Assembly: GCA_047495785.1 (NCBI GenBank)
Contig: JBLDXI010000034.1
Location: 434,001-498,000, forward strand
From: Lepidodermella squamata
Lineage: Eukaryota; Animalia; Gastrotricha
Direction: 5' to 3'
DNA length: 64,000 bases
Under the pieces are notes generated by a model that ran no database searches, was not told the DNA's origin, and worked only from the letters and a program-made list of their open reading frames with translations. Positions 2,524-61,408 of this stretch are shown in pieces; the stretch's first letter is position 1, and each line of letters opens with the position of its first letter. Made by a program: the position numbers and the translations under genes.

Positions 2524-5346
2524 ATGGAACCAAGGACGCATCGATCCATGACGGAGTTCACTATTGTCAAAGCCTTGCGTTATGGCCGCCTACGACAATC
2601 GTATTTGTACAAACGTATCGGGAACTCTCAAGAGCAAGTGGTTATCAAAGAAACCAACTTGACAACCCTTCGCAAGACATTTGAGAAAGACTTTGCCAGA
2701 ATTGTTGAACTTCTCCACGAACGAGTGAGTTATTGTCAATAGATGCCTTATTGGGGGTGTTTTACGCCTTTTACACTTGAAATATCAATCAAACTCAAAG
2801 TACATAGTTTGAATAAGTTTACTACAAAGACAAATTAGGATTATCCTGAGAAGAGTCTGTACACCTCAAATCGCGCACATTTTCAATTTGCAGGATTTGT
2901 TAATGGTCGATATCAGCCATGCAAACATTGTCAAGGTGTTTGACGCTTCCGAACGTAACTTTCTACTTTCAACACTTTAACTGCCAAAAATCGACCGTGA
3001 GACCCAATATTTAGGTCTAATTCCTGGGTCTGTCAAAAAGTCGTGTTTTTCGGGTAAACGATGCGTCCTAGGGCAAAATGCCCGACGGCAAAATGTAGGC
3101 CATGAGCCCGCGGTTCTTTTGACACCGAACTCGGGGCCATAAGGTCTGAGCAGGTCTTTGAAAATGACAGTTGAAAAACGCCGAAATTTTGGATTAGAGC
3201 CAAAAATCAGACCCAAGAATTGGACCTAATTATTAGACCCAGATTATGGCGCAACAATCGAAATTTCATTGTTTTTCAACTGTCATTTTCAAAGACCTGC
3301 TCAGACCTTATGGCCCCGAGTTCGGTGTCAAAAGAACCGCGGGCTCATGGCCTACATTTTGCCCTAGGACGCATCGTTTACCCGAAAAACACGACTTTTT
3401 GACAGACCCAGGAATTAGACCTAAATATTGGGTCTCACGGTCGATTTTTGGCAGTTAAAGTGTTAATTCAGACATAGAAGTTCTTTTTAATAATATTCCA
3501 ACTATAGAGACATATTCCGGTGAAGACTTTTCTTCCCATAACTGCATGATGAGATATTTGGTTATGGAGGTTTGCGGGGGAGGGAGTTTCGAAAGCCTGA
3601 TCTCGACTGAGACTGGACCAATCCCGGAAATTATGCTTCAAATATGGTCGCGCCAACTTGTATCCGCTTTGGCTTATCTTCACGGCCGGAGGATTGTTCA
3701 TCGCAACATAACGACAAGCAATGTATTACTAACAGAAGACCGAGGCACATCGAAACTAGCTGATTTGGGAATCGTCGAGAGATTAGACACGTAAGATTGA
3801 AAAGAAGCATTAAATACTTGATGAATTCGATATTCAAAACAGTGGTTCGCAAATAACCGCTCTAGCTGCATGGTACCCTTCCGCTCCTGAGATTTTCAAA
3901 TCTCAAACGAAATCATCTCCAAGTGATGTTTGGTCGTTGGGATTCGCGCTCTTCAAATTAGCCAACTTTCAAGAACCAGTATGGGAATGACCTTGCGTGA
4001 TTACTTACTAAGTTATGATATAGTTTTACAGTTCATCTCGATGATGGATATTCTGAGGTAAATTGTTTAGTTGAATTAAGCTAAACTCAATAATACTTTA
4101 GTAATAACCTGAAACCATTTAACGAGTCCCGCGGCTATTCCGATGACTTCCGCGATTTTGTTATGTCAATGCTCGCCGTGAATCCTGATGATCGGCTGAC
4201 CTCGAGTCAGCTTAACGCCAGTAGTTTTCTGCTGAAATCAGCACCCATGCGTTATACAAAGGTATGATTGATTTTTCCATGTCGTTTGAATTGTTGCTTG
4301 AAGATTGATTTGTCGTACCTTTTATTCTTCAGCCAGACCAAACAGTTGTCGAACCCAACCAAGAGGCTGTTAAGGTAGCTCCAAACTATTTTACATCTGA
4401 TTCAGGGGTTGGTTATTCGAATTGCCAGGAGCTAGTTGACTGCATATGCCGGAGAAAAAACGTCTTGAAATTGGCGCAGCTACTGTCAAAAAGGGACCTC
4501 GGTCTGAGTCCAGACTGCAAAGACGACATGGGACGTCCTCTGTTGGATCTTGCGGCTGAGAGAGGCTACAACGACATAGTGGAAACTTTGGTCAGGCAAT
4601 TCGATGCAGACGTTGATGATCGTAATGCAAATGGCGTAAAGCCACTGTCGATCGCCGCCTTCAATCGCGATGTTGGGATGGTGAGGATGTTGGCTAGTGA
4701 TTTCAACGCCGATGTTAATTCTGCCACCAATGATGGCCGTACGCCGCTGTGGACCGCCGCCTTCAATGGCAACACCAAGGTGGTGAGGATGCTGGCTGGC
4801 GAGTTCAATGCCAACGTGAATAAAGCCAATAAGGATGGCTGTACGCCACTCTACGTCGCTGCCCGCAATGGTCACATCGAGGTGGTGAGAACGCTTGCTA
4901 GCGAATTCAACGCCAACGTGAATATGGCCACAAATGATGGCGCGACTCCACTGTTCGTCGCCGCCCAGAATGGCCACATCGAGGTGGTGAGGATGTTGGC
5001 TGAGGAGTTCAAATCTGATGTTAATTCTGTCAGAAAGAGCGGTGCGACACCAGTGTACGCCGCCGCCGAGAAGGGCCACCTCGAGGTGGTTGAGGCACTA
5101 GCTGGCCACTTTCACGCCAACGTGAATGCTGCATGTAATGATGGCATGACGCCGTTGATGGCAGCCGCATATAAGGGCCATCACGATGTTGCTAATATTC
5201 TCATCATGAAATTCCGAGCCAATATCGACGCCGTAGATCGCCATAACAGGACAGCCATAGATTGTGCCACGAACTGCCATGCAAGTGTTTCTGCTGATGA
5301 CAAGCGCAAGACTATCGCACTACTCGAACGGGATAAGTCAAAATAG
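2524..5346 (+). CDS. Pseudokinase-ankyrin repeat protein, copy 1 (about 608 aa, 7 ANK repeats + cap)
   Basis: Exons 2524-2724, 2894-2954, 3508-3790, 3843-3978, 4032-4057, 4102-4261, 4333-4374, 4429-5346 join in frame with GT-AG. Motifs: VVIKE, HANIV, YLVME, HRNITTSN, KLADLG, APE, SDVWSLG, then 34-aa ANK repeats. Confidence 0.85.
2973..3462. mobile_element. Palindromic piggyBac-like MITE in intron 2 of pseudokinase-ANK copy 1
   Basis: About 200-bp inverted arms beginning CACTTTAACTGCC. Flanked by tcaa/TTAA. The paralogous intron at 11134-11192 lacks it and has TTAA at that position. Confidence 0.85.
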
Positions 5347-5473
5347 CCTGCCGTTGAACAGAGATCTCATAGACAACTCTTTGTTTGGAATTTATGGTAA
5401 ATGAAACTTTTTCTCATAACAATTTTAGAAAATAATTAAACATCGGAAACATAACAATGGGCGGATAGGGCGA

Positions 5474-5860
5474 ATGAACCTATACGCGATGATTTGTTTT
5501 AACATTCCCAAGTTCATCTCAACGATGTTTAAGTTGAACTCATGATGTCAATGCTCGCCGTGAATCCCGATGACCTCGAGTCAGCATAACGCCAGTAGTT
5601 TTCTGCTGAAATCAGCACCCATGCGGTATACAAAGGTATGATTCGTTCCCATTTCATCTGAATGGTTGCTGCAAACTTGATGTATCGTTCCTTCTATTCA
5701 TTCCATTCTATCAGCCAGACCAATCATTCGTCGAATCCAACCAAGTGGCTGTTAAGTTAGCTGCGGATTATTTTACAATTGATTCGGGCTCTAGTCATTT
5801 AAATTGCCAGGAGCTATTTGACTGCGTAATTAAGCGAAAAACGTCTTGAAATTGGCGCAG
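5474..5860 (+). pseudogene. Degenerate duplicate of the kinase C-lobe, linker and start of the ANK exon
   Basis: MSMLAVNP...KSAPMRYTK|gtatg, PDQSFVE...VK, ELFDCVIKR...; contains deletions and is truncated before the ANK repeats. Confidence 0.75.
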
Positions 5861-6438
5861 GTTGTGGTAGTTTTTGGTAGATTTTGTGCAGAAAGACAAT
5901 TTCCCTCTGGAAGCGTCTCATTGCAAATGTTACCATACCTAAGGTTTTCAGACGCTCCGAGTATTCAGCACCTTCAGGTTCGACCTTCAGGTGAAACTAT
6001 ATAGAACTATAAAGTAGGTAGAACTATATAGAAACAACTCTTGCGCTGGTATATTGTTGTAGCCCAGCGCCAAACTCTATTCAAGAAAAATTTGACTGTA
6101 ATTTCCCTCAATAAAAACGAATATGGACGTATCATTTTCTTTCTCGTATTATCGAAGATGGTGAAATGAGTCGAAGCGTCTATCTCACTCATCATTGCAT
6201 TTTACTGCCGTTCTAGGGGGTCGGCCCAAGCCTGGTGCATTTTTTTAAAAGAATTCTTTCAAAATAGAGCCAAAAAGTAAATTAAGGGTTGGACATTTCG
6301 GGAGGTTGACTTCTAAGGGTCGCAGGGATGGACGGTGTAAAACATCATGTAAAAACGTGTTAAAACATGTAAAAAATCAAAATAAATTGGAAAATTTGAA
6401 TAAATCTGAAGCGCGGATTTGTCCAAAGCTACGTTATA

Positions 6439-6632
6439 TCGCGCCTTCCGCGCCAGAACAGTGTGCCGGAAATAGAAACAAATGGCGTAATGCATTTGAT
6501 GCGCAGAAAAAACTGGCGTTCAACTTTTTTTCCAGCGATCAGGCACGCGACTGACTTGGCGAAGATGCAAAAAGGTAGTTTTACGCCATTTGTTTCTATT
6601 TCCGGCACACTGTTCTGGCGCGGAAGGCGCGA
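6439..6632. mobile_element. Short foldback MITE with TATA target-site duplication
   Basis: About 50-bp perfect inverted arms TCGCGCCTTCCGCGCCAGAACAGTG... Filled site gt-tata-[element]-tata-gtag vs empty paralog gctacgttatagtagc near 15001. Confidence 0.9.
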
Positions 6633-6852: not shown

Positions 6853-7430
6853 AAGCGTTCACCGTTCCCGATAAAACTGCAATTTAAATGGAAAAATTCT
6901 CCGATATCAGCAGCATTCAAAGCCGACATGAGACATGAACATTGTTTCTAAACACCTGAGGGCACCTGGTAGCTAACATGCCAAAACCTAGCTCCGTGGG
7001 GGGCATGAATAATCATCAAAAAAGGAAAAAATCAAAATCGCAAAACCCAGTCAAAACCCTATGCTAGGCCTATACTAGGCTCCTCATTTCTAGGCCTAGG
7101 CTGGGCTCGAATTCGGCCGCTTTTTTGGGCCCAGTCTAGGCTTTACTGGGCCTACAGTAGGCCTAGACCCAGAGGTATACGTAATAACAATTAAGACTGG
7201 CTACCCTCTGCTCCCTGAGCTGTCAGGTGCCTGTAACTATTGCATGTCGACTCGTAACGTTGTTTGGAAGAATCGAAAGACAAATCACTCGCTCGTGATT
7301 TGTGTCGGTGGTTGGAGTCGAGCGCGGGTCGCCTTACCAAAGAGGTGGACGCGCTACCACTAGACCAGCTGGTCCCACAGTAAGGGTTAATAGGGGTATA
7401 AAAGTTTCAAGCTGGGTTTTTCAATTTGCT

Positions 7431-8030
7431 GCGGACGAAATCGCCGCAGGAGAACGAGCAGATTGTGCGCTATTGTCTGCTATTGCCTCGACTGGCGAAG
7501 TTGAGAGAGAGAGAGGTGCCGGACCTCCGGTTCAGGCTGCGGCTCCGCCGCTAGGAGAACCCTATCGGATTGGTTCGCGCAATCATCTAGGTCAAGAATT
7601 TTACGGCCTCGTTTTCGCTGGGTTAACGTCGCAAATTGACAGCAAATCACGGCCGGAGTTGGTTGAATGGCTGCTGGAGGCTAAAACGGCGACGGCTAAA
7701 TTTTTGGCACTTCAACGCGAATCTGGCGGCGGTTTGACGGCGAGTGATAAGGAAATAGCGGCATTTCAGGCCGAATTGGATTCGATTGTTGACTCGTTTT
7801 TAAATGTTGTGAATCATTTCGACATTGCTCAGCTTGCTTTCAAGCGTTTTATTGCATTTATTGTCGCTTAAAATTGTTAATAAATAAATTAATAAAAATA
7901 TTTTAGGTGACCGAAAATGACGCCGAGATTTCATTAGGGTTTTATCGGCTATTCAGCACTTCGATCCTAATTTCTGAAATTTCAGTCGAAAATTATGGCA
8001 ACGTATTCCAAAAGCTGCGTAACCAATTCT
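7431..8030 (+). pseudogene. Truncated, interrupted copy of the helical gene at 2-1076
   Basis: Near-identical to 571-1040 but with a ~100-bp insertion at about 7480-7584, no 5' part, and indels in the last exon. ORF 7302-7871 is a chimera. Confidence 0.75.
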
Positions 8031-8656
8031 TCTATTTGGCAAAATTTTGTAGGAAATTCAACTATTTTTTTTAAATTAAACCTAATCTAAAAAATTTACC
8101 GGTGAATAACTAGAAATCACGATGGTAACTGGTTCGGTAATTTTCGGTATTTTACCCGGTTGGACAAATTTCTCCGGGAATTTTCATCCTATCAACAAGA
8201 GAGGCACAATTGTTATCTTTCCTCGGGAATTTTTGAATTTTTTCTATAATTTTTCTGGCCACGAGATGGGACGTTTTTTGGGACACGCTTCGGCCTACAG
8301 AGCCGATACCAAAAATCTCATATTCTCAAATTTCCACCGCTCCTATTCTTCTAAGGCACGGAGCGATTCCAAGAGCTTCGTCATGGTATAGTAGTGACAA
8401 TTAAAAGCCATTTTGACCGACTAGGCTGACTGTTTTTGTTCGGCAATTTTTTGCCATGATGAAGAATAAAGATGAAGCGTGTAAGCTTGTTATGGTCAAA
8501 CTTCTGAGTTCAAGTAAAACCGCAACACCACAAGTGGTTATTACGCTTTTTTAGTTTTGAAGTAGGTCAAATTTTATTGAACCTTGTAGGCATTTTATAT
8601 TGAAGTACGAGCTTACAGCTGCAGCAAAACAAATTGTAGATTTTTATAACCTCAAA

Positions 8657-9852
8657 ATGGCACCTGAAAAGAAAATCATTTCTGTTGTAGGAGCAACTGG
8701 ACAACAGGTAAAGCATCGAAATTCTTAGATTCTTCCTAAAGTTTGTTCAATTTCTGAAGGGCGGTTCTGTTGTTCGAGCGATTTTGGAGGATCCTGCCAC
8801 CGAATTCAAGGCTCGAGCTTTAACCCGCGATGTCAACTCGGCGAAAGCCAAGGCCCTGGCTGAGCAAGGTGTCGAAGTCGTTCAGGTCGATGCTAATGAT
8901 GAGGACGCGTTGGCCGAGGCTATCAAAGGCTCGTATGGATTGTTTTGCGTTTCGGTAATCGACTGGACCGATCCAGATAAAGAAATCGCACAGATCAAGT
9001 CGATGGCTAACGCGGCAAAGCAAGTTGAAAAATAATTTCCTACTTGTCCTAGGAATAATAATCCTCGCTCAAACGCTTTAATATTCTCATTCTAAAAAAA
9101 TCCTACAAAGAAATTAAAGATATTTTATTTGTCTGTATTTTAGGAAAGCTGGAATCAAACATGTTATTTGGTCTACCTTGGATGACCCTCGCAAATTTGG
9201 ACCGCTAAGCGACGATCATTATCCAACTTTGCACGGCAAGTACAAAGTAACGCATTGCGAGACGAAAGCTGGATCTGACAAATTCTTCGATGGCCAGCCT
9301 GTTACCTATCTGATAACCCCAGCATTTTGGGACAACTACTATACTGGCTTTTTCCCAATGCATCGCGGCCAGAATGGTAAATTGATTATCACAGTCCCAA
9401 TGGGGCATGTTAAAACGCCTGGCATGGCCGTAGACGATATTGGTCGTTGTGCTTACGGAATTTTCAAAGACCCAACTTGGATTGGCAAGCGAATTGCAAT
9501 TGCTAGTGAATCGATGACGGTCAGCGAGCAAGCGGAGAAAATTGGCAAAGTTCTAGGTGAGGAGGTTGTGTACCAGCCTGCGCCTTTCGAAGTTTTCCGG
9601 AACTTGCCGTTTCCTGGTGCTGGCGAATTGGCAAACATGTTTCAGTTTTGCCAGGATTTCTCCGAGAAATTGAATGCTAGCCGCGAAGCTACGAAGACGC
9701 TGAACCCGAAACTCATGAACTTTGATCAGTTTCTGGCGAAGTACCTACGGCAAACTTATCAAAGCTCCTTGAAGACCTTGGGAACATCGGGAAAATTGAC
9801 TCTTTCGACACTTCGGTTCGGATATAAGGGAAACTCCTTGAATAATCACTAA
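8657..9852 (+). CDS. NmrA/HSCARG-family (atypical SDR) protein, copy B, with frameshifted C-terminus
   Basis: Exons 8657-8707, 8760-9019, 9144-9852. GATGQQG Rossmann motif, ALTR, KHVIWSTL. A 4-nt insertion near 9745 replaces the GKLIKAP end with a longer tail. Confidence 0.85.
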
Positions 9853-10301
9853 TTTATAGAAAAATGACTCCATTCAAGACTGCATAATATTCGATGATTT
9901 CTAATTATATTTTTGAGTTCACGAATAACTTGAAACAATAAACTTCTGCGATTTCGATAACCAAAGCCCTGAAATTACTTATGTCTTGTGCCTCAAGGGC
10001 GAATTATCTTTGTGAGTGACTATCGAATTTCTTTTTTATTCTATCGAGGTGCAAGTTGAATAAGTCTTCGAACAAATAATGAGCCCAAGTCGCCGCTAAA
10101 ACCGGCACACTTCACTCATAGAGATAGGATAGTGCAAATAATAATGCGTGTAAATTTCATCGCATTCGCCGTTTTCTTATCGCCGTAACTAGGGAGAATG
10201 AAGCTTCTTATAATGTCGCTCATTTGTTGAAGCTTTATTACTATTTCCTGTTTGATAAGGCCTGCTTTTAACTCTGTCATCATTTTTAGCTTCGCTTGAA
10301 T

Positions 10302-13300
10302 ATGGAACCAATGAAATATCGATCTATGACATCGTTCTCTGTTGTTAAAGCCTTGCGTTATGGCCGCCTACGAAAATCTGTGTTGTGCGAACATAACGGG
10401 AGCCCTCAGGAACAAGTGGTTATCAAAGAAACCAACTTGACAACCCTTCGCAAGGAATTTGAGAAAGACTTTGGAAGAATTGCTGAACTTCTCTACGAAA
10501 GAGTGAGTTATCGTCAATATATGCCTTATTTTGGCATGAGACGTACTATAGGACGCCGCGGCTTGCAGAAAATCAGAAAAAGCGTGATATTTTTAATGAG
10601 GTCCAAAGTCCAACTCGCCCAATGAGTCATCTCATTACATTTTTGCAATCATCTTAAGCCTCTTTTTTTGCTTAAGATCAACGAGATTAACACATCTTTA
10701 CACAGCGTCACGCCGATCTTTTGCTGTAAAAGAATTCTCAGCAGTTTTTAATTATTGACATTTATTGACATAAAAAATTAAAATGTTATAAATTAAAAAA
10801 TTTTAAATTTCGAAATTACTGGACTAAAAATTAAATCGTATGCACGGAATATTTATGCACAGTGGGTCGCAGCCGCGGGGTCATGTAATGGGAGCTTCGA
10901 AGCCGCGGCGTCCTATAGTACGTCTCATGTATTTTGGGGGTGTTTTACGTCTTTTCCACTTGAGTTATCAATCAAACTCAAAGTAGTTTGAACAAGTTAA
11001 CTTCGAAGACAAATTAGGATTATCCTGGGAAGAGTCTGTACACCCCAAATCGCGCATATTTTAATATTTCAGGATTTGTTAATGGTCGATATCAGCCATG
11101 CAAACATTGTCAAGGCGTTTGACGCTTTTGAACGTAACTTTCTACTTTAAATTCAGACATAGAAGTTCCTAGTAATAATATTCCAACTATAGAGACATAT
11201 TCCGGAGAGGATTCTTCTTCTCTCAACTGCATGATGAGGTACTTGGTGATGGAGTTTTGCGGGGGAGGAAGTTTCGAAAGCCTGATCACGCCTGAGACTA
11301 GACCTATCCCGGAAATCATGCTTCAAATATGGTCGCGCCAACTTGTATCAGCTTTGGCTTACCTTAACGACCGAAAAATCGTTCATCGCAACATAACGAC
11401 AAGCAATGTACTGCTAACAGAAGACCGAGGCACAGCTAAACTGGCTGATTTGGGAATGGTCGAGAGATTAGACACGTAAGATTGAAAAGAAGCATTTAAT
11501 CCTTGATGAATTCGATATTCAAAACAGTGGTTCACAAATGACCGCTCTAGCTGCGTGGTACCCTTCCGCTCCTGAGGTTTTGAAATGTCAACCGAAATCA
11601 TCTGCAAGTGATGTTTGGTCGTTGGGATTCGCGCTTTTCAAATTAGCCAACTTTCAAGAACCAGTATGAGAATGAACCTATATACGCGATGATTTACTTT
11701 TGTTTTATCATTCCCCAGTTCATCTCAACGGCGGATATTTTAAGGTAAACTCATGAGTTGGATACAGAGGTCTCAAGCTTAAATCTATGATAATTTAGTA
11801 ATAAACTGAAACCATTCGACGAGTCACGTGGCTATTCCGTTGAATTCCGGGATTTTGTCATGTCAATGCTTGCCGTGAATCCTGATGATCGACCGGCCTC
11901 AACTCAGCTTATATCCAATAGTTTTCTGTTGAAATCAGCACCCATGCGTTATACAAAGGTATGATTGGTTCCCATGTCTTCTGAATTGTTGCTGCAAACT
12001 TGATTCATCTTTCCTTCTATACTTTAGCCAGACCAATCATTCGTCGAACCTAACCAAGTGGCTGTTAAGGTAGCTGCGGATTATTTTACAATTCATTCAG
12101 GCTTTAATTATTTATATTGCCAGGAGCTATTTGACTGCGTAATGAAGCGAAAAGATGTGTTGAAATTGGTGCAGCTACTCTCTAACAGTGATCTCGGTCT
12201 TAGCCCAGACTGCAAAGACGATGATGGATTGCCTCTGTTGTCGCTTGCAGCTGGGATTGGCTACAACGACATTGTGGAAACTCTGGTCAGGCAGTTTGAG
12301 GCAGACATTGGAGTTCGTACTGCTAGAGGTTCGACACCACTGTTGATTGCCGCCGGCAATGGCCATGCCGAGGTGGTGAGGATGTTGGCTGGCGAGTTCA
12401 ATGCCGATGTTAATTATACCAATATAGCTGGCGCGACGCCACTTGGGATCGCCGCCAACAATGGCCACACCGAGGTAGTGAGGATGTTGGCTGGCGAGTT
12501 CAATGCCGATGCTAATTCTGCCAATGAGGATGGATTGACGCCACTGTATGCCGCCGCCTTCAGTGGCCATACCGATGTGGTGAAGATGTTGGCTGGCGAG
12601 TTCAACGCCGACGTGAATACTGCCTCGAAAGATGGCTTTACGCCACTGTATGTCGCCGCCTCCAAAGGCCACAGCGAGGTGGTGAGGTTGTTAGCTGGCG
12701 AGTTCAAGGCGAACGTGGAATCGCCGAACAAAAATGGGGCCACGCCACTGTTTGTCGCCGCCCAGAATGGCCACATCGAGGTTGTGAAGATGTTGGCTGG
12801 CGAGTTCAAGGCGAACGTGAAATCGGCGCTCGAAGATGAGGCAACGCCACTGTTTGTCGCCGCCGAGAATGGCCACGGCGAGGTTGTGAAGATGTTGGCT
12901 GGCGAGTTCAAGGCCGACGTGGAATCGCCGAATAAAAATGGGGCAACGCCACTGTATGCCGCCGCCTTCAGTGGCCATACCGATGTGGTGAAGATGTTGG
13001 CTGGCGAGTTCAACGCCGACGTGGAATCGCCGAATAAAAATGAGGCAACGCCACTGTTTGTCGCCGCCGAGAATGGCCACGGCGAGGTTGTGAAGATGTT
13101 GGCTGGCGAGTTCAAGGCCGACGTGGAATCGCCGAATAAAAATGGGGCAACGCCACTGTATGTCGCCGCCCAGAATGGCCACATCGAGGTGATTGAGGCA
13201 CTAGCTGGCCAATTCAGCGCCAAAGTAAATGCTGCTCGTAATGATGGTATGACCCCGTTGATGGTCGCTGCATATTTTGGACATCACCATACTGCTGAAG

Positions 13301-13449
13301 TTCTCCTTACGAAATTCCAAGCAAACATCGACGCCGTAGATCGCCGTAATAAGACAGCCTTGCATTGGGCCACGAACTGCGATGAAAGTGTTTCTGCTGA
13401 TGACAAGCGCAAGACTATCGAAATACTCGAGCGGCCAAAATTAAACTAG
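10302..13449 (+). CDS. Pseudokinase-ankyrin repeat protein, copy 2 (about 744 aa, 11 ANK repeats + cap)
   Basis: Exons 10302-10502, 11073-11133, 11193-11475, 11528-11663, 11719-11744, 11799-11958, 12028-12069, 12124-13449. Same kinase exon sizes and motifs as copy 1. Confidence 0.88.
10535..10929. mobile_element. MITE with 30-bp perfect TIRs and 8-bp TSD (P-element-like)
   Basis: TIR CATGAGACGTACTATAGGACGCCGCGGCTT. TSD TATTTTGG at 10527-10534 and 10930-10937. Absent from intron 1 of copy 1. Confidence 0.9.
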
Positions 13450-14654
13450 CTCGCAGTCAAGCATTTACCTAGACACAATGACCCAATAATTTATCGATAA
13501 ACAAAGGTGAAACTATATAAAAACTCTTGCGCTGGTAAATTGTTGTAGCCCAGTGCCAAACTCTATTCAAGAATATTTTGACTAAAACGTCCCTCAATAA
13601 AAACGAAGATTGAAGTATCATTTTCTTTCGCGTATTATCGAATTATAGATAGAGAAGCGTCTATCTCACTCATCGCATTAGTAATTCATTTTATTAGCTG
13701 AAGCAAGAACATTATCCGAGTGCCGAACAACAATGGCAAACTCGTAGCCATCGAAGGCGACAAAGCAGCAAGTTACTGCGACGAAAGCGGCTGCAACTAA
13801 TTCAAGAACCACTACCGGACGGGTTGAATTACTTGGACAATTGGCTTGCAATTATGTGAATTAGGTGGCAATGGTTTGGCAGGAATAAAAACTGTGTACT
13901 AAAATGGGATAGTTTGCTAGTGTTTCACCTAGGGAATAACAGGTAAACAATCATTGTGGAACCACTCGAAAGTCAAATTTCATGAACACGCTGATTGGTC
14001 AGCCGATCTTTGCTATGACTCCCGGAGGAAGCTTTCAGTCGTGCGATCCATGAGATTTTTTGCAACACGTGATTTCAGCCACAGTAATTTACTACGATTT
14101 AAATGGAGTTTACGCTCGTAGTCAATAGAAACCGTGCAGATGGTGTGGCAAGATCATTTTTTACATAAAAATAAAATAATTTCATCCGCATGGCAGAAAT
14201 GTAGCCATAGCGAAATTGACAGGGCAGACTTGGAATTCCGCGGCCTATCCGATGGCACGAAAAAATCGAAAATAAGAATTGCGCAACTTGATCTAAAATC
14301 GGTTTGTCGAAAACTGGGTCAAATCGACTTACCCGGCCAACCAGGTGTGCTGGTACAGCGGGAGTTGAGTCAACATGCTCATCAAGACCCAGCGGATCGT
14401 CTCGTGCTAAAAAATGGGCGGAAAATCATCAACTTTGAAAGAAATCGGGAATAAGGTGTATGCCCAAGCCGGGTGCATTTTTTAAAAGAATTCTTTCAAA
14501 ATTGAAGCAACAGGTAAATTAAAGGTTGGAAATTTCGGGAGGTCGACTGCTAGGGATTTTCGAAGCAGGAATGGGCGGTGTAAAAACATCACGTAAAAAC
14601 GTGTTAATACATGTAAAATCTAGCAACAGCTGGAAGATGTAAAAACCTGTAAAG

Positions 14655-15402: not shown

Positions 15403-16515
15403 ATGGCGCCTGTAAAGAAGATCATCTCTGTTGTAGGAGCAACTGGTCAACAAGTAAATCATCGACATTTGGTAGATTATTTTTTTAATTTGTTTAATTT
15501 ATTAAGGGTGGATCTGTTGTTCGAGCGATTTTAGAGGATCCTAATACCGAATTCAAGGCTCGAGCTTTAACCCGAGATGCCAACTCGGCGAAAGCCAAGG
15601 CCCTGGCTGAGCAAGGTGTCGAAGTCATTCAGGTTGATGCTAATGATGAGGACGCGTTGGCTGCGGCTATCAAAGGCTCGTATGGCTTGTTTTGCGTCTC
15701 GGTTGTCGATTCAATTAATCCCGATAAGGAAATTACCCAGATCAAGTCCATGGCCAACGCCGCAAGGCAATAGTCTATACTTACCGTCCCAAAAAATTAA
15801 ATATTAATTAATGAGTATTAAAATTTTTATAAATTAAAATTAAAATTAAAGAAATATTGGATAATTTACTTCCCTGTATTTTAGGAAAGCTGGAATCAAA
15901 CATGTCATCTGGTCCACCTTGGATGACCCTCGCAAATATGGACCACTCAGCGACGATCGATTTCCAACTTTGCACGGCAAGTACAAACTGCCACACAACG
16001 AGACTAAAGCTGGGTCTGACAAATTCTTCGATGGCCAGCCTGTTACGTTCATGGTAACCACAGGATTTTGGGACAATTACTACACCGGCTTGTTTGCACT
16101 GCATCGTGGCCAGGATGGAAAATTGGCGATCACAGTGCCGATGGGGCATGTCAAAACGCCCGGAATAGCTGTTGACGATATCGGCCGCTGTGCTTGTGGA
16201 ATTTTCAAAGACCCAACTTGGATTGGTAAACGCATTGCGATTGCTAGTGAAACAATGACGATTGGAGAGCAAGCTGAGAAGGTTGGAAAGGTTCTGGGCG
16301 AGGAGGTTGTGTACCAGCCTACGCCTATCGCAGTTTTCAGGAACTTTCCGTTTCCTGGCGCGGCTGAATTGGCGAACATGTTCCAGTTTTGCCAGGATTT
16401 CTCCGACCAATTGAATGCTAGCCGAGACTTCGAAGCTACGAAAAAGCTGAACCCGAAACTCATGAACTTTGATCAGTTTCTGGCGAAGTACGGCAAACTT
16501 ATCAAAGCTCCATGA
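15403..16515 (+). CDS. NmrA/HSCARG-family protein, copy C (313 aa)
   Basis: Exons 15403-15453, 15507-15766, 15885-16515. Second intron is GC-AG. Intact frame. Confidence 0.9.
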
Positions 16516-35300: not shown

Positions 35301-35700
35301 GTTGGTTTTCAGAAAATGGCCAGATTCAGTCGCAATCTTAGACAAACGCGGCCGATCAGCGTTGATGTGGGCGTGCGAACGCGGCCATTTCGCCGTAGCA
35401 CGTTTCCTCTTTGAATCTTGGCCTGAAGCTGTTCAGTTGAAGGAAGTAGACACAGGCGAGACTTGCCTCATGCTGGCATTGCAATCTGGGAGTTTAGAAC
35501 TGGTTAAATTCATCTATGAAGCTTGGACTGACGGCCTGGAGGTTGAGTCTATGACTAAGAAAACTGCTATGTCGCTGGCGATCGAATTGGGCCAGATGGA
35601 GCTCCTTAGATATCTTCATGACGTGTGGGCTGCTCGAATGACTTTCGTCGCTGCGATCAAAGCTGATCCTGCTGAAGATGCGGATGATGAAAAAGAATGA
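32318..35700 (+). CDS. NLR-like protein (about 1091 aa): TIR-like domain + two tandem STAND (NB-ARC-like) NTPases + ankyrin repeats
   Basis: Exons 32318-32485, 32537-33651, 33708-35700 join in frame. Walker A GPEGVGKT and GRPGIGKT; Walker B VMIFDD and ILFVFDD; winged-helix MHRL; about 7 ANK repeats. Confidence 0.85.
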
Positions 35701-37954: not shown

Positions 37955-39180
37955 ATGATCGCAAGGATCTACGTTATTTTTGCGATTGTCAAAGCCTGCT
38001 TTGCTTCGAATGAGTTGGCAATCGCAGCGTTGAAGCAAAAGGTGATGACAAGCTGTCCATTTCTAACTTCGGCTGATCTGCTATTCGAGAATAAGCTAGC
38101 AACTGGCAGTCCGATTACAGTTTTCACTTGGGTTAATATGACTCGTTTCATTGAAATCAACGATTTAGACCAAAGGTAAAGAAACCCTATCTAAACGCAA
38201 TGTCAATCCTTGAATCTATCAACAGGCTCTCAATTTACGCGACAATGATGCTGTATTGGAAACTCCCTTGCAATGTCTCCTACTCAGAATTGAACTCTAC
38301 AAAGAGTAAGATGGACAAGCTACTTCAACACGGAGCTCTCGAATTCGGAATGGCTGGTCAGTCCAACTGGGAGCCTAATGTTATCCATTACAACTCAGTC
38401 GGCAAATCAAACGTGAAAGACAGGTATATTTTCCATAGACCTCACCTAACCCTTGAAAATGTGGGTTTAAGCTGGTCTGGCTCAACGAAGGTCGAGGTTA
38501 ATCCTCAATCTGGATCGGTTATCGGAAGTTGGGAAGGTTTGGGCCGCTTCGACTCAGCATGCGGTGGTTTCTCATTCGAAAAATTCCCATTTGACAAGCT
38601 ATCTTGCGCCATTGTACTACGAGCTGAATCCTCGAGAAAATACCTCACCTACAACATATCATATTTCGGCATAGATGCTAGCAAAATGGACGATTTTATT
38701 GACGATAGCGATTTGTGGACGTACGAAGGAAGTGGGGCTGAAAAACTTGTCGATCAAAGCTGCGATCTTCTCATGCTAACCACGCGTTTCCAGCGCCGCC
38801 ATTTGTATTATATCTGCAATCTATTCGTGCCTATTATCGGCCTTTTCCTGCTGCAAATGGGTAGCTTGATGATGCCGCCGAGTGTCCCTGATCGGCCAAC
38901 ATTCAGCATGACTGTTGTACTGGCTTACGTTTTCCTCTTAACATCGATCTTCGAAAGCATCCCTCGAACTTCAGATGCAGTCTATCTCGTCCTTCTTGTG
39001 GCGTTCAAATTTTTCTGTGGAATATTTCTGACAATGTACAACCTAGCTGCATGCGCTTTTGCTGGGAAAAGGTTCAAGGACCCTCATACCTTGAGATACT
39101 TTGATTTAGCTGTGTTTTTATTGCTGACTCTAATTACGTTTGCTGTCGATTTTGCTTTCATGGTTCTAATGTTAACATGA
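37955..39180 (+). CDS. Divergent Cys-loop ligand-gated ion channel subunit
   Basis: Exons 37955-38175 and 38226-39180. Signal peptide, WEPNV, C..FPFD..C loop, pre-M1 R, four TM helices. Confidence 0.9.
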
Positions 39181-39372
39181 TGAGCTTTGAAATATGAGCA
39201 AATGCGAGGAATCCTTTATAGGTTAAGCCAGGAATAGCTTGCAATCGCACGGGAAATTCTAAAAGCGGACGCTTTTATCACTCCCCACCCACTGGTGATT
39301 TCCCTAATGGGTCTAGAACCCGAGCCAAAAGATGCAGTACATGGCAAAATTAAACCTTCAAAATCACGAATA

Positions 39373-54610: not shown

Positions 54611-55341
54611 TTTCATTTGGCGGATAGGGCGTTAGGTGGCATAAAAAAGTGGTCGCATGCCGCAGCATTTGCAAATTCGGCTCAAATATGTAAATTCACA
54701 ACGGGGAGATTGTTAGTTTCCTATCTGTTACAGTGTTGTCTATATGTATCCAACCCCACAAAGGAATTCAAAGGTAACTGACTCAGGGTATTCCGGACAT
54801 AACAGCTCAGTGTGAATATTCTCATGCGAATTGAGGTCAAAGTTCACATTGAAGCGAGATGATGATTTAAAGAAAAAGAAAAAGAAAATAAATGAAATTT
54901 TACAATAAATAGTTTGTTAAATTCCCAGTGGTAGAGTTTGATAAATTAGAATTTTTTTCTGTAATTACCGATTACTGAATTTGCTCATCCGGATACGATT
55001 AGACAAGAGCTGATATCTTTATCCTTCGAAGAATTATTTATCTTCCATTTTCCATTCAGCACTGAAAAGCAAAATGTAGCAAATGTTTCGCTTTTTCTCA
55101 GGAATTGCAAAATAGATAGACTACAACCAAAGATAAAACCTGAGCAAAACGGTTCTACCGGCACACGGCACACTTTAGAAATATACAAGCACGGCATACT
55201 GGCTGGTATGTTATATGATAAGACGAGCTCCTAATCGCCGCAAAACGACAGAAATTGCACTTATGTCAAGCTTTCATCATGTTCTCTATTTCTTAAGGCC
55301 TATTTTTTGTCTCAGCCATCAAATTCAACCAAGAATTGAAT

Positions 55342-58300
55342 ATGGATCCAAGGAGGCATCCATCTATGTCGGGGTTCACCTTTGTTAAAAACTTGGGTGA
55401 TGGCCGCCTACGAAAATCTGTGTTGTACAAACATAGCGGGCGTAAACAAGAGCGAGTGGTTTTCAAAGAAACCAACTTGACTATCCTTCGAAACGAATTT
55501 CGAAACGACTTCGATAGAATTGCTGAACTTCTGAACGAAAGAGTGAGTTTTAAGTTCTACGAATTGTAGATTTTCGATTCAAAATCATCATGAGGGTAGT
55601 GAGAGGTTACTTCAATGAGGGATTAACCTGGTGAAACGGCCGGCTAACTCCTATAATTTATGTAGTAACAAGTATGTTTCAAAATCGCAGGATTCGTTAA
55701 TGGCCAGTATCAGCCATGCAAACATAGCCAAGATTTACAACGCTTTCGAAGGTTTGCAATCCAGTTTTTCGAATTATCCTAAAAATTTTGACATAGAGGA
55801 ACTCCAAGGTTCTCGCATGAGATACTTGGTGATGGAGTTTTGCGATGGTGGAAGCTTCGAACGCCTGATCTTGACTGAGACTGCACCCATCCCTGAAATC
55901 ATGCTTCAAATATGGTCGCGTCAACTCGTATCAGCTTTGGTTTATCTTCACGGCCGAAGAATCGTTCATCGCAACATAACGACAAGCAATGTACTTCTAA
56001 CAAAAGACCGCGGCACAGCGAAACTAGCTGATTTAGGAATCATTGAGAAATTAGACATGTAAGATTGCAAAGTAGCGTTCACTCGGTGTCAAGCTTGATT
56101 GTCTAATCAGTTGTTCGAAAATGACTGCTCTAGCGAAGTGGAGGACTTCCCCTCCGGAGGTATGGAACGGTCAACCGAAATCATCTGCAAGTGATGTCTG
56201 GTCGCTGGGATTTGCGCTCTTCAAATTAGCCAACTTCAAAGAACCAGTATGAGAAATAACCTAAGTGATTAGTTTTTTTTTGAAACTCAAATAATTTCCC
56301 AGATCGACTCGACAGGTGATATCATGAGGTAAAGCTGGGGAGTTGAATTCAGTGTTCAGTGGTCGCAAGCTACATTTTTTTATATTTATTTTGATATAGT
56401 AAAAACCCTTTGAAACCATTTGAGTCCTCTCCTGGCTATTCCTATGAATTCCGCGGTTTTGTTATGATAATGCTCGCTAGGAATCCAGGTGATCGGCCGA
56501 ACTCAAGTCAGCTTCAAGCCAGTATATTTCTGCGGAAATCAGCGCCCATGCAGTATACAAAGGTTTCATTACTTTCTAAATAATCTGAATTCTCGCTTGA
56601 ACCCTAATGCATCGTTGCTTTTATTCTCCAGTCAGTCGGTCAACCCAGCCTAGGGGATGTTGAGGTAGCTACAGATTTGTCCACTGTTGATTCAGGCTTT
56701 TGAGCTTTGCCAGGAGCTGTTTAAATGTGTACGGCAGAAAGACGTGTTGAAATTGGTGCAACTGCTGTTGAACAGGGACCTAGGTCTTAGCCCTGATTGC
56801 AAAGACACCATGGGGCGTCCTCTGTTGTATCTTGCTGCTGAGACAGGCTACAGCGACATTGTGGAAACTCTGGTCAGGCAATTCAAGGCAGATGTTGAAG
56901 TTAGAAACAAAAATGGCGCGACTCCACTGTGGGCCGCCGCCAAGAATGGCCACGTCGAGGTGGTGAAGATGTTGGCTGGCGAGTTCAAGGCCGAAGTTAA
57001 TTATGCCAACAGTGCCCTTGAGACGCCACTGTATGTCGCAGCCAAGAATAACAAACTCGAGGTGGTGACGATGTTGGTTGGCACGTTCAAGGCCGTCGTG
57101 AATAAGGCCGCAAATGATGGTCGTACGCCACTTTTTATAGCCGCCCAGGAGGGCCACGTCAAGGTGGTAGAAGCACTTGCTGGCCACATAGCCGCCCAGC
57201 AGGGCCACGTCAAGGTGGAAGAGGCACTTGCCTCGGTTAATGATGCAAAGAAAGCATTGACTGAGGCCGCTGATAAGAAACATTTCGATGTTGTCGATAT
57301 CTTGTTCACGAAATTCGGAGACAAAATCGACGCCGCTGTCAGACACGATGCAATCGAAAAATCTATGCTCGCAGAGCATCCTGGGATTCGACCGACGTCT
57401 AGTCAGCTTCGATTCAGTTATTTTTTTCTGAATTCGGCACCTATGCGGTATACAAAGGTATGATCAATTTCCCCCACCTGAAATCTGTTGCAATCATGCA
57501 TTGTTCCTTTCCTTCTTCAGCCGGACCATTCATCCGCCGAACCCAAGCAAGAGATTGTTAAGGTAGCTCCGAATTATTTTACACTTGATTCAGTTGTTAG
57601 TAATTGAAATTTCCAGGAGTTATTTGACTGTGTACGGGGGAAGAAAGATGTTTTAAAATTGGTGCAGCTACTGTCGAACACAAACCTCGGTCTTACCCCT
57701 GATTGCAAAGACGAAAAGGGCTTCCCGCTTTTATACCAGGCTGCTCGAAACGGCTACAGCGACGTTGTGGAAACTCTTGTCAGGCGATTCAAGGCAGACG
57801 TTGAAGTTCGTACTGCATATGGCGCGACACCACTGTTTGCAGCCGCCTTCAATGGCTACGTCGAGGTGGTCCGGATGTTTGCTGGCGAGTTCAATGCCGA
57901 CGTGAATTCTACCACTACTGATGGTCGTACGCCACTGTACATCGCCGCCCAGAATGGCCACACCGAGGTGGTCCGGATGATGGCGAACGAGTTCAAGGTC
58001 GATGTTAATTTTGCCACCAATGATGGCCGTACGCCACTGTTCACCGCTGCCTTCAATGGCCACATCGAGGTGGTGAGGCTGTTGGCTGGCGAGTTCAATG
58101 CTGATGTTAATTCGGCCGATAAGGGTGGCTATACGCCAGTGTACGTCGCCGCCTTCAATGGCCACGCTGACATTGTGAGGCTTTTGGCTGGCGAGTTCAA
58201 GGCCGACGTGAATAGGGCCGAAAAAGATGGACTTACACCACTGTACGCCGCCGCCTTCAATGGCCATACCGACATTGTGCGGATTTTAGCTGGCGAGTTC

Positions 58301-58840
58301 AAGGCCGATGTTAATTCGGCCAACTATCATGGCTTTACGCCACTCTTCGTCGCCGCCGAGAAGGGTCATGCCGAGGTGGTGAGGATGTTGGCTGGCGAGT
58401 TCAAAGCCGATATTAATTTTGCCGCGAAAGATGGCTGTACACCTCTGTACTTCGCCGCCCAGAAGGGCCACGCCGACATTGTGAGGATGTTGGCTGACGA
58501 GTTCAACGCTGACGTTGATTCCGCCAGCAATGATGGCGTGACGCCATTGTACATGGCTGCCCAGAACGGCCACGTCGAGGTGGTTGAGGCGTTAGCTGGC
58601 CTATTTAAAGCCAACGTGAATGCTGCATGTAATGACGGCATGACACCGTTGATGGCAGCCGCATATAAGGGCCATCACGATGTTGCTGAAGTCCTCCTCA
58701 CGAAATTCGGAGCCAATATCGACGCCGTAGATCGCAGAAATAAGACAGCCATAGATTGGGCCCATAACTGCGATGAAGGTGTTTCCGCTGATGCCAAGAA
58801 CGAGACTATCGTAATATTCGAGCGGACTAAGTCAAAATAG
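55342..58840 (+). CDS. Pseudokinase-ankyrin protein, copy 3 (about 963 aa) with two tandem ANK cassettes
   Basis: Exons 55342-55542, 55691-55751, 55797-56058, 56111-56246, 56303-56328, 56400-56562, 56632-56664, 56714-57457, 57521-57562, 57617-58840, all in frame. Confidence 0.82.
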
Positions 58841-59234
58841 CCTACCGTCGAACATCAATCTAGTCTCTAGTCAGATTCACTCTAAACTTATCTGGAAACC
58901 AGGATAAAAAGTCACGAGCATCATTTTTGCAATGATTGAAACGCTCGCGTTGGTGAAGAGAAAATTTGGCCTAACCCCAAGCCATTGCACGTCAAACACG
59001 AAGCTGAACTATAGTCATGTTCCTGCAACGATTTTAGTTTTATTATATTGCAGCATGGCAGGTGAAAACTTAAAGCATAAAAATGACTAAATAAAGCAAG
59101 TAATAGAGCATCTGATATCAACACAACAATCAACAATTCACATGTGTCGAGTTCACATCTGGAGCCATGAGAGAAGCAATGAATAATGAATCAGAAGGTT
59201 TTTTATAGCTGCCACATTCCTTACAAAATGCATA

Positions 59235-60049
59235 CCGTAAGGCGGTCTTACTTCGGACAGGGTAACTTCGGACACTTTTGACTTTGAACTGGAGTTTCTT
59301 CTCAACCCCGGTGAATATGGAAGCCATTCAAATTGCAAAAGATAGCCCTGAGTCATGGCTTTCAAATTACACCAGCAACATTGAAAACAGATAAGTATGC
59401 GAAGAATAGTCCAACTTCTTGGCAGTCATGTCCCGCGACCCAAAATTGCTAACTTTTCACCAGGTAGGTATTTTTTGCTGGAGAGAAGCGGAAAAGATAG
59501 AGCACCATCGATTTAGTAATGCTGTCATGTTCAAACCAATTTTTAACGAAAATTTTGATCAGGAAATACTTTAGAAAACAAATGTAGTCCCGGGTAAGTT
59601 CGGACAGCTTCAAACTACGGCAAATTCAAAAAGATGTCAATTGACCTTGACATTTTTTAAACTCCATATTTTATTGAGAACAGCACTAAGCTGCGTTGGG
59701 AGCACAATTCAATATTGAGGGTTCAAATCCCTCATCATGCATTTTGGTTTTTTTTCAAGTTTTTTTTTCTTAAATCTGCTCACAAATTTTATCTCGCTTT
59801 AATGTGAACTTTGACCCCAATCTAATCACATTGAGCTGTCCGAAATTACCCCAGTTGTGTCCGAAGTTAGCCGGGCCAGTTTTCCTTTAATACCTGTACG
59901 GGAAAAAAAAGAAATTTTCCGGAGTTGATACTAGAATATGCAGTTTTTCAAGGCGCATCTTTTGACATAAAGCCCCTCAAAAAATTCGTTCACCTCGAAA
60001 AACTAAGCCCCAAAAACACGTTTTTGTCCGAAGTAAGACCGCCTTACGG
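59235..60049. mobile_element. TA-flanked MITE with CCGTA termini
   Basis: Perfect TIR CCGTAAGGCGGTCTTACTTCGGACA. Confidence 0.88.
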
Positions 60050-60053
60050 TATA

Positions 60054-60508
60054 CCGTAAACTACAGTATAAAGGCCGCATCCTGAATAAAGGCCGCACCC
60101 GAATAATCGCCGCAAAAACACCCCATTTTCAACAATTTGGCAATAATAAAGGCCGCGCGCGAATAATCGCCGCACTTAACAGCGATTAGCAGTCACCCTC
60201 AATGAAACACTTGGGGTGACTCCGAGTAGACGGATTATCCGCACTTCTTAGCGAATATGTAAACTCATAGCGCTAGCTGCAGATCTTGATTACAGTGAGA
60301 TCCGGCCTCTGGCGCACCTGTTACACCCGTTAGTAGTGAATAAACTGCTAGTTCAGCGTGACGGCTGAAAATTCAAGAAAATAAAGGCCGCACTCGAATA
60401 ATCGCCGCACCTTAATAATCGCCGCACCTTAATAATCGCCGCATTTTTCACCCCTTTCTGAAAAATCAGGAAAATTAATCGCCGCGGCCTCTATACTGTA
60501 GTTTACGG
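60054..60508. mobile_element. Second CCGTA-type MITE, directly abutting the previous one
   Basis: TIR CCGTAAACTACAGTATA.AGGCCGC; AATAATCGCCGCA sub-repeats; TA flanks. Confidence 0.88.
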
Positions 60509-61216
60509 TACCTTAACCATCAAACATCGCCGGATCATGACACCAGAAAAAGACCATGGGCTCCTGGGGTCTGACCGGGCCCAGCGGGGCCCTTGATGGT
60601 AAGGGACCCCGTTTAGCTTTCCATTTTAGTTGCAAACATGCAATGAGAGGATGCTGACAGAGATCCGACAAGGTCCAGCTCTGAGGGGGGTAAATCGAGC
60701 ATTTAAACCCAAAATTCGCAAATCAACAGGGGGGACCCTTACGTTTTTCTGAAATTTTCGAAGGCCAGGGGGTTTGTTTAACCCCCTTACTCTCGGATCA
60801 CTGCTGGAAATTTGAAAAAAGTGAGACTTTAGATCATTATTTGATGACAAATTTTGAAATTTAGAGTTATAGACGCTTAATCTTTATCTTTCAAAACATT
60901 ATTCATCTTCCATTCAAATCCAAATTTTCGCTTTTCTCTAGAACTGCAAGATAAATTAACTTCAAACAAATCGCTTAAGGATAACATGCGACCTATAACC
61001 AAGACTGCTCTACCGGCACACGTTACACAGAGATAGAAACATATCAGATACCAGCGAATTTTGGCTGGTATTTGATATGATAAAGCAAGTTTCTTATCGC
61101 CAGAACTTGAGAGCAATTGCTTGTTCATATCGTCGCCTATTTCTTGCTTTTATCCTGTTTCCCATTCGCTAAGGCTTATTTTTCTTGTCAGCCATCAAAT
61201 TCAGCTCGGATTGAAT

Positions 61217-61408
61217 ATGGATTCAAGAACGTATCGATCAATGTCACAGTTTACTGTTATTGGGGAGCCCTGGCGTCGTGCCACCTTACGAACATCTATG
61301 TTGTGCGGACGTAATGGGAGTCCTGAAGAACGCGTGGTTATGAAAGAAACCAACTTGACAAACCTTGAAAAGGTCTTCACCGGAATTGGTGAAATTCTCC
61401 GTGAGAGA
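61217..61408 (+). CDS. Exon 1 of pseudokinase-ankyrin copy 4; remainder outside the window or lost
   Basis: MDSRTYRSMSQFTV...VVMKETNLT...ILRER|gtgagt. The upstream 350 bp resemble 54990-55340. Intron 1 is filled with insertions. Confidence 0.7.

Follow-up and report, generated by a model that had tools for sequence, protein, structure and literature searches.

The 64,000-nucleotide stretch of Lepidodermella squamata DNA analysed here (the window, to which all positions refer) carries a tandem, fast-turning-over cluster of genes in which a kinase domain that looks catalytically dead is followed by ankyrin repeats in variable number. Two intact genes, one rearranged and broken gene, one relic and one lone exon were found. 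We consider this, with good probability, to be a tandem birth-and-death family of soluble pseudokinase-ankyrin proteins. In the predicted protein, a short flexible linker connects a disabled kinase at the N-terminus to a solenoid of ankyrin repeats, of 34 residues each, at the C-terminus. Copies are born when a block of about 7 kb is duplicated, and they die by deletion, frameshift and nonsense mutation. The ankyrin array is presumably the variable protein-binding part and the dead kinase a constant docking or conformational module, which may still bind nucleotide; such a combination would make these proteins scaffolds or adaptors rather than enzymes.

The three genes lie on the same strand and follow one plan, in which six kinase exons precede a single ankyrin exon. 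Start codons were placed at 2524 (copy 1), 10302 (copy 2), 55342 (copy 3) and 61217 (copy 4). The features of the cluster are the following.

1209..1553, + strand: remnant of an NmrA gene, truncated and interrupted by in-frame stops, upstream of copy 1 (tblastn, blastn)
2524..5346, + strand: copy 1, intact by conceptual splicing (626 aa), GT-AG model with open frame, Pfam Pkinase and Ank
2524-2724, 2894-2954, 3508-3790, 3843-3978, 4032-4057, 4102-4261, + strand: kinase exons of copy 1 (GT-AG model)
2971..3464, no strand: foldback MITE in intron 2 of copy 1, with 110-nt arms that are 100% complementary
4333-5346, + strand: exon 7 of copy 1, linker, 7 ankyrin repeats and stop
5472..5860, + strand: relic, consisting of intron 4, exon 5, the start of intron 5, a deletion, the exon 6 tail, intron 6 and the ankyrin start
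9178..9852, + strand: NmrA-like gene (Pfam NmrA, E 9e-17), 450 nt upstream of copy 2 and co-duplicated
10302..13449, + strand: copy 2, intact by conceptual splicing (762 aa), Pfam
10302-10502, 11073-11133, 11193-11475, 11528-11663, 11719-11744, 11799-11958, + strand: kinase exons of copy 2 (gene model)
10535..10929, no strand: another MITE, unlike the first, in intron 1 of copy 2, with 30-nt perfect terminal inverted repeats
12028-13449, + strand: ankyrin exon of copy 2, 11 repeats
55342..56562, + strand: kinase of copy 3, six exons, open frame, 283 aa, aligning end to end with canonical kinases
55342-55542, 55691-55751, 55797-56058, 56111-56246, 56303-56328, 56400-56562, + strand: kinase exons of copy 3
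56632..56703, + strand: start of exon 7 of copy 3, conserved acceptor, 5-nt deletion leading to a frameshift and a TGA at 56701-56703
56675..57457, + strand: decayed ankyrin array 3a of about 4-5 repeats, which has internal deletions and is open in a different frame
57521..58840, + strand: cassette 3b, linker and 10 ankyrin repeats, nonsense TGA at 57605-57607
61217..61408, + strand: copy 4, consisting of exon 1 alone, in which 4 codons are deleted and the Gly loop is altered; a GTGAGT donor comes next

Conceptual splicing yielded intact products for copies 1 and 2 only, and all splice sites in these two gene models are GT-AG. The intron 2 acceptor of both was inferred; several AGs would keep the frame, of which one was chosen, and with the nearest AG the intron would be 23 nt long. 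The MITE in copy 1 has ends that are unique to that site within the window and has no counterpart in copy 2, and the MITE stretch of copy 2 has none in copy 1. The link between kinase and ankyrin repeats was lost from copy 3 because of the 5-nt deletion in exon 7. An X1 contig spans the region of this deletion (56227-56792), and one spans that of the 3b TGA (57436-57793), with zero differences in either; other copies have TCG or TTA at the site of this TGA. Array 3a may use a cryptic acceptor at 56675. At about 57362 it runs, without a change of frame, into the final 32 codons of exon 6 from the kinase of another copy, and the fusion ends at a GT donor. That copy 3 is a working double array, or offers a choice between cassettes, was considered and rejected in view of the frameshift and the nonsense codon. 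For copy 4, tblastn detected no further exons in the 2.6 kb up to the window end at 64000. The exon 6 tail of the relic runs from ..SMLA and has an 8-nt deletion, its ankyrin part corresponds to the first ~200 nt of the ankyrin exon, and positions 5545-5860 matched 11860-12174 at 84.6% (blastn).

These models agree with a preliminary description of the same DNA in having an intron-rich kinase, a single ankyrin exon, and arrays of 7, 11 and about 4-5 plus 10 repeats. The relic that it had placed near 5474 was recovered by alignment and tblastn, with a start at about 5472. Its count of three complete copies holds for copies 1 and 2, which are open, but not for copy 3 with its 5-nt deletion and nonsense TGA. 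Birth and death fits two intact and three broken or fragmentary loci better than an expanding family does.

A blastn block map identified the duplicated unit as a block of ~7 kb that includes the NmrA-like gene. Elsewhere in the window, about 20 kb off, lies an NB-ARC/ankyrin STAND gene (32537-35700), which is separate from copies 1-3. Also noted were a DUF1295 gene with its best matches in fungi and plants at about 54% identity, a class C receptor-like ORF that had no match at 1e-10, and an ORF of a divergent nicotinic-type channel, the last of which points to an animal.

Single exon pieces reached 59.1 and 65.3 bits with Pfam Pkinase (PF00069), for which the curated cut-off is 31.7. Residues 9-275 of spliced copy 3 aligned with canonical kinases, so that the alignment takes in the whole bilobal domain, with the Gly loop at one side and the end of the C-lobe at the other; for exon 1 by itself no Pfam or PDB similarity was detected. 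A motif search of the 64-kb window for HRN[IVL] in a kinase context returned exactly three sites on the + strand, at 3699, 11384 and 55967. All three read HRNITTSN, each with DLG downstream, and DVWSLG follows at 3925, 11610 and 56193 in copies 1, 2 and 3, so that the motif set first described for three loci was found at each. Since HRNITTSN replaces HRD-x-K, every copy that has this region lacks both the catalytic Asp and its Lys neighbour, and no basic residue in the I-T-T-S stretch substitutes for them. Copies 1 and 2 have RYGRLR as their Gly loop and copy 3 has GDGRLR, both degenerate forms being read as reported, and the P+1 'GT' is replaced. The other kinase motifs of the three copies are VVIK/VVFK, SAPE/SPPE and DLG. 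The β3 Lys, αC Glu, catalytic-loop Asn and DLG Asp are kept; the first two, whose retention had been claimed, were placed by the end-to-end alignment of the spliced copy 3 kinase with canonical kinases. By its sequence definition a pseudokinase has lost at least one of the VAIK Lys, the HRD Asp and the DFG Asp; here the HRD Asp is Asn in three of three copies, with the VAIK Lys and DLG Asp present. Each gene has one kinase domain by tblastn, where a tandem kinase-pseudokinase would have two. HRN domains of HER3, JAK2 JH2 and PSKH2 are inactive or have very low-level activity according to published papers. From these motifs we infer that the kinase domain is catalytically inactive.

The best PDB matches of the kinase pieces were STE20-type kinases (SLK, STK10, STK3/4, STK24, TAO2), with NEK1, PLK4 and GCN2 at similar E-values. 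The N-lobe pattern KETNLTTL is Nek-like, and the nearest database proteins carry mixed names. RIPK was absent from the best 60 PDB matches for the core piece, from the best 60 for the exon-4 piece and from the 15 for the exon-6 piece. No close relatives were present in 1.8 billion representative proteins, all matches in a JGI metagenome scan had at most 39% identity and were thus generic kinases, and a query of the linker and ankyrin N-cap found nothing related among 5.8 billion proteins. Without close relatives in such large protein and metagenome collections, the family looks lineage-specific, as had been proposed. An exhaustive HMMER search with the kinase core returned 33,207 kinases with multi-domain proteins as top scores, and the only recognisable relative among them was P0035/L001, from a Logan contig. 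This relative has the fully active motifs GEGGFG, HRDIKPHN and DFG. It has family-specific motifs and the length of the β4-β5 insert in common with the window family, and an intron identical in position and phase to intron 3 of the window genes. Because the only recognisable relative has fully active motifs, the HRN state is, on this sequence comparison, derived.

The ankyrin repeats have 34 residues, are encoded in one exon and follow the consensus G-x-TPL-x-x-AA. Array length is 7 repeats in copy 1, 11 in copy 2, about 4-5 in 3a and 10 in 3b; the differences are multiples of 102 nt, which keeps the reading frame. Repeats 7 and 9 of copy 2 have the same nucleotide sequence. At DARPin-face positions, which were set a priori, pN/pS was 1.47 versus 0.46 in the framework, the face value resting on about 76 changes and being not significantly above 1. 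Positive selection on the predicted face is therefore suggested, at a level that is not significant. The arrays vary in repeat number, as first described, and their predicted binding face changes much faster than the framework. An AF2 model of the copy 1 ankyrin exon, made without alignment, had a mean pLDDT of 59.8; because of this low confidence it was read only for helix-pair periodicity and for its disordered first 29 residues. The single-exon arrays let one see, in a natural setting, how the binding face of repeat proteins comes to vary.

A variable binding face and shuffled repeats, rapid turnover of copies and the STAND gene in the same window would all suit intracellular immune sensors, whose arrays recognise pathogen or danger molecules and whose pseudokinase acts as a switch or decoy towards active kinase paralogues or NLR-like proteins. 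No TIR, NB-ARC, NACHT, death or CARD domain was found in the scanned pieces of copies 1-3 (exon-3 core, exon 1, exons 4 and 6, and ankyrin exons). The co-duplicated gene is an NmrA-like, redox-type gene and not an immune one, the positive selection fell short of significance, and the Giardia parallel discussed below is tied to subcellular localisation and not to immunity. A receptor or immune-sensor role, as first proposed, is a guess, and we regard this explanation as unlikely. It is decidedly unlikely that the family forms one branch of a so far undescribed system for intracellular recognition in a small animal, with shuffled ankyrin specificity, a nucleotide-binding dead kinase as switch or decoy, and readout by active kinase paralogues or STAND proteins; if true, this would parallel plant tandem-kinase and decoy immunity.

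The kinase dN/dS of copies 1 and 2 was 0.30, an estimate that gene conversion and recombination between copies blur; divergence between the two is a mosaic, 4-7% in introns 2-3 and 22-43% in introns 4-6. From the hinge to DLG, pN/pS was 0.19-0.32, versus 0.64-1.06 for residues 1-45 (Fisher p = 0.005, copies 1-3). Gap columns numbered 0 in 867 nt of kinase coding sequence versus 14 in 291 nt of intron (p = 3e-9). Purifying selection acts on the dead catalytic core, and the Gly-loop end is near-neutral. A kinase module that is constant, as previously described, is hence seen in the constrained core but not in the first 45 residues, and the module is not uniformly constant. With its core constrained and its ATP-lid end drifting, the family is a natural case in which to test why a pseudokinase is conserved.

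It is quite improbable that all loci are decaying pseudogenes of a once-active kinase-ankyrin family, with the frames of copies 1 and 2 merely left over. Three of five loci are visibly broken, MITEs lie within introns of both 'intact' copies, and ankyrin-coding DNA is open in several frames from composition alone. Moreover, a search for RNA evidence found only DNA-type contigs, and those aligned to 55320-61319 had no GT-AG joints and only paralogue-derived joins. Decay is, however, at odds with a pN/pS of about 0.2 in the kinase core, with coding sequence free of the indels that are many in introns, with GT-AG at every splice site of copies 1 and 2, and with a frame preserved through changes in array length. 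That the domain still works as a kinase by a non-canonical mechanism, like the HRN-bearing HER3 and JAK2 JH2 at low level, is highly improbable: the four retained residues, the strong constraint on the catalytic-loop region and the published weak activity of HRN domains speak for it, but the catalytic base and neighbouring Lys are gone with no basic substitute in I-T-T-S, the R-Y-G-R-L-R Gly loop is near-neutral and the P+1 'GT' is replaced.

We compared the favoured pseudokinase-ankyrin scaffolds or adaptors with known systems. HER3, JAK2 JH2 and primate PSKH2 likewise have Asp-to-Asn in HRD with the ATP-positioning residues otherwise retained, but they belong to unrelated families, and the window genes also lose the neighbouring Lys and the Gly loop and carry an ankyrin fusion. 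ILK and RNase L combine a pseudokinase with ankyrin repeats as scaffold or sensor; unlike in the window genes, their ankyrin part is N-terminal, they are single-copy and their repeat number is fixed. RIPK4 and ANKK1 (and DAPK1) are soluble proteins with the kinase-then-ankyrin order of the window family, but are single-copy, active HRD kinases where the window genes have HRN. Fungal STAND/NLR-like hypervariable arrays and designed DARPins resemble the window arrays in their near-consensus framework, face-focused variation and repeat shuffling in one exon; the window unit differs in having 34 and not 33 residues and no attached NTPase domain. In contrast to NLR/STAND receptors, the scanned pieces of copies 1-3 contained no central NB-ARC or NACHT.

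The closest parallel described so far is the expansion of Nek-ankyrin proteins in Giardia lamblia, in which an N-terminal kinase is followed by an ankyrin array of 1-26 repeats (Manning et al., 2011; PMC3218828). Catalytic residues are missing from most of its members, genes duplicate and disappear rapidly, and relatives differ through gain and loss of repeats (PMC3218828). The window family has the same N-terminal kinase and variable C-terminal ankyrin array, but in another organism and by independent origin; Giardia repeats are of the TALM class, and the TALM motif is absent from the ankyrin repeats here. The window copies all share one specific HRN lesion, and an assignment of their kinase to Nek would be tentative. 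If expressed, the window family would be a second, independent large pseudokinase-ankyrin expansion, in an animal.

Scanning all six reading frames of the window for motifs located exactly three sites, all on the + strand, where HRN in a kinase setting precedes an aliphatic residue. All three read IVHRNITTSNVLLT..DRGT.KLADLG, and SDVWSLGFALFKLAN is found about 75 codons downstream of every site. The motif-bearing exon pieces scored 59 and 65 bits against Pfam Pkinase (cut-off 31.7), and Pfam identified the long ORFs downstream of the kinase exons as ankyrin arrays. A tblastn search of the whole window with the copy 2 kinase recovered three full kinase exon sets (copies 1, 2 and 3, starting at 2524, 10302 and 55342) plus three smaller pieces, and nothing further from the kinase: a fragment (5536-5635), a tail of 32 codons (57362-57457) and a lone first exon. 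The lone exon (copy 4, 61217-61408) carries a 4-codon deletion, and the same search detected no additional exon in the remaining 2.6 kb of the window. The preliminary description of four kinase-ankyrin copies and a relic was largely right; the family that it called expanding is better described as undergoing birth and death.

Gene models of copies 1 and 2 and their intronic elements
2524-2724, 2894-2954, 3508-3790, 3843-3978, 4032-4057, 4102-4261, 4333-5346, + strand: exons of copy 1, 626 aa
10302 to 13449, + strand: exons of copy 2, matching those of copy 1, 762 aa
2971-3464: foldback MITE in a copy 1 intron, 494 nt, 110-nt perfect arms
10535-10929: MITE in a copy 2 intron, 395 nt, 30-nt perfect ends

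Every intron of copies 1 and 2 has GT-AG ends and most are 44-71 nt long. Exon 5, at 26 nt, had been overlooked previously. The intron 2 acceptor in these models, CTATAG, was our choice. The nearest AG would give a 23-nt intron; CTATAG results in a 59-nt intron 2 in copy 2 and a beta4-beta5 insert exactly equal in length to that of P0035, the single recognizable relative from outside the window. The two intronic MITEs are different elements, and the copies that carry them both look intact.

Copies 1 and 2 lie in a tandem segmental duplication (blocks 618-6374 and 7585-14618, 82-90% identity), in which the kinase-ankyrin gene shares its block, in both cases, with an NmrA-like gene and the tail of a gene without a name. 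An NmrA-like gene adjoining the kinase-ankyrin gene is borne out in the window, the one in the first block being a remnant.

1209-1553: NmrA-like remnant of the first block, cut down and containing stops

NmrA-like paralogues at 15919-16515 and 19914-20555, whose proteins are 79-83% identical to that of the NmrA-like gene at 9178-9852, are not followed by a kinase-ankyrin gene, and thus the pairing with the pseudokinase is not constant. An ORF without a Pfam match at 146-904 is partly duplicated at 7302-7871 in the same ~7-kb block, with the last 95 residues 96% identical. In X1, a run of DNA-type contigs, contig depth over the catalytic-loop exon is about 15 times the single-copy level, a depth that is not a copy number but fits many paralogues.

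Several other features were observed in the window, including a collagen-repeat ORF. This ORF, the nicotinic-type ORF below and the short GT-AG introns (about 50 nt) are indicative of a small animal.

28009-28650, - strand: DUF1295/steroid-reductase-like ORF
31866-31947, - strand: tRNA gene (Rfam, 63 bits), directly upstream of the TIR/STAND-ankyrin gene region
38200-39180: divergent nicotinic-type ligand-gated channel ORF (PDB E 9e-9)
39295-41556: 753-aa single-exon ANF-receptor ORF, adjoining the nicotinic-type ORF

The best matches of the reductase-like ORF are from Rozella, Basidiobolus, plants and oomycetes (41-56% identity) and not from animals, with one 54% match filed under an oribatid mite; it may have been acquired horizontally, or may be a gene mostly lost from animals. 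In its C-terminal half, the ANF-receptor ORF has a hydrophobic look resembling a membrane domain; of the 8000 best candidates by shared words, none matched this ORF at 1e-10.

Copy 3 had been counted as complete, a status that does not survive its lesions. Its six kinase exons are open (55342-56562, 283 aa), but exon 7, when read from the acceptor at 56632 that is conserved in all copies, contains a 5-nt deletion, and the frame ends at a stop at 56701-56703. In principle, the frame could be rescued by splicing to a candidate cryptic acceptor at 56675. The ankyrin sequence that follows (the first array, 3a) is open in a different frame, has internal deletions and about 4-5 recognizable repeats, and is joined in frame at ~57362 to the end of a kinase exon 6 (32 codons) that belongs to a different copy and retains its GT donor and intron. 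The second cassette (3b, 57521-58840), a linker plus 10 ankyrin repeats, has a TGA at 57605-57607 where other copies have TCG or TTA. Both lesions are spanned by X1 contigs with zero differences, although X1 may be the source sample of the assembly itself. The relic (5472-5860) preserves intron 4 and exon 5 with the beginning of intron 5; past a deletion, it resumes in the tail of exon 6 and retains intron 6 and the initial ~200 nt of an ankyrin exon. At the relic's breakpoint (5536-5560) as well as at the copy 3 fusion (57353-57365), homology picks up a few bases from one and the same set of ..SMLA codons in exon 6; possible explanations are an ancestral cassette common to both, a hot spot of recombination, or coincidence. 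The segment 59100-60900, located between copies 3 and 4, is repeated at high copy number and probably represents a transposable element: X1 contigs summed over it reach 40-200 times single-copy depth, with many variants among them.

Residues 9-275 of the spliced copy 3 domain align with canonical kinases, pairing LGDGRLRKS with the GxGxxG loop, VVFK with VAIK, and the Glu of ..LNE|RD with the alphaC Glu. By this pairing the ATP-positioning Lys, the Glu, the catalytic-loop Asn and the DLG Asp are retained. Neither the catalytic Asp nor the Lys two positions further on is kept; I-T-T-S takes their place, and the Gly loop of copies 1 and 2 is degraded to R-Y-G-R-L-R. Exon 1 by itself gave no matches in Pfam or PDB. 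HRN is also the published state in HER3, JAK2 JH2 and primate PSKH2, and reports of activity in HER3 and JAK2 JH2 describe no more than a very low level. The earlier assignment of these genes as putative pseudokinases is well supported by their sequences.

The linker and N-cap had no relatives among 5.8 billion proteins. When the kinase core was searched exhaustively against 1.84 billion representatives, 33,207 kinases were returned; the highest-scoring matches examined were proteins, multi-domain or repetitive, in which separate matched stretches added up, 10 matches checked by name came from mixed families and organisms, and one of the 150 best of the 33,207 had ankyrin repeats. No match above 39% identity was present in the JGI metagenomes. 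P0035 is encoded on a 1.2-kb genomic Logan contig from another organism (L001, 1-1205, SRR21279729), which ends ahead of any region where an ankyrin part could appear. It is ~39% identical to copy 2 along the aligned exon-3 stretch. With the kinases of the window it has KQVNLTRL, WSSQLVSA and the length of the insert in common, and its intron after DFG+8 coincides in site and phase with their intron 3; its exons 1-3 are fused. Its motifs look active (GEGGFG, HRDIKPHN, DFG), and judging from these the HRN state, common to all copies in the window, is derived.

Copies 1 and 2 diverge in a mosaic fashion (4-7% in introns 2-3, 22-43% in introns 4-6), a pattern that suggests gene conversion between them, and the selection ratios therefore need caution. 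With this proviso, kinase dN/dS was 0.30 for copies 1 versus 2 and 0.45-0.52 versus copy 3. Constraint along the kinase is very uneven: pN/pS was 0.19-0.32 from the hinge to DLG, dead catalytic loop included, versus 0.64-1.06 for residues 1-45 (Gly loop to beta3; Fisher p = 0.005, copies 1 and 3). Between copies 1 and 2, gap columns numbered 0 in 867 nt of kinase coding sequence versus 14 in 291 nt of introns 2-6 (p = 3e-9).

The ankyrin repeat unit is 34 residues, one more than the DARPin consensus, with the extra residue placed after helix 2. The arrays have 7, 11, ~4-5 (3a) and 10 (3b) repeats, with length differences that are whole multiples of 102 nt, and in copy 2 repeats 7 and 9 have the same DNA sequence. 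A single-sequence AF2 model of the copy 1 ankyrin exon was weak (mean pLDDT 59.8), with helix pairs at the expected period and the first 29 residues unstructured. Entropy peaks at repeat positions 2, 6, 7, 10, 14, 30 and 32-34. For face positions set in advance from DARPin design (2, 10, 11, 31, 33 and 34 in 34-residue numbering), pN/pS between nearest-neighbor repeat pairs was 1.47 versus 0.46 for the framework, which excludes uniform purifying selection across the array. The face value, from ~76 changes, is not significantly above 1 and at most suggests diversifying selection on the face.

PDB matches of the three C-terminal kinase pieces favor STE20-type kinases (SLK, STK10, STK3/4, STK24 and TAO2); NEK1, PLK4 and GCN2 scored similarly, and the kinase was assigned to no family, Nek included. 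The sensor or immune role proposed for the family is guesswork. Among described systems, the Nek-ankyrin expansion of Giardia (Manning et al., 2011; PMC3218828) comes closest; it resembles the family described here in its kinase-ankyrin architecture, the prevalence of dead kinases and rapid turnover, but differs from it in the class of ankyrin repeat.
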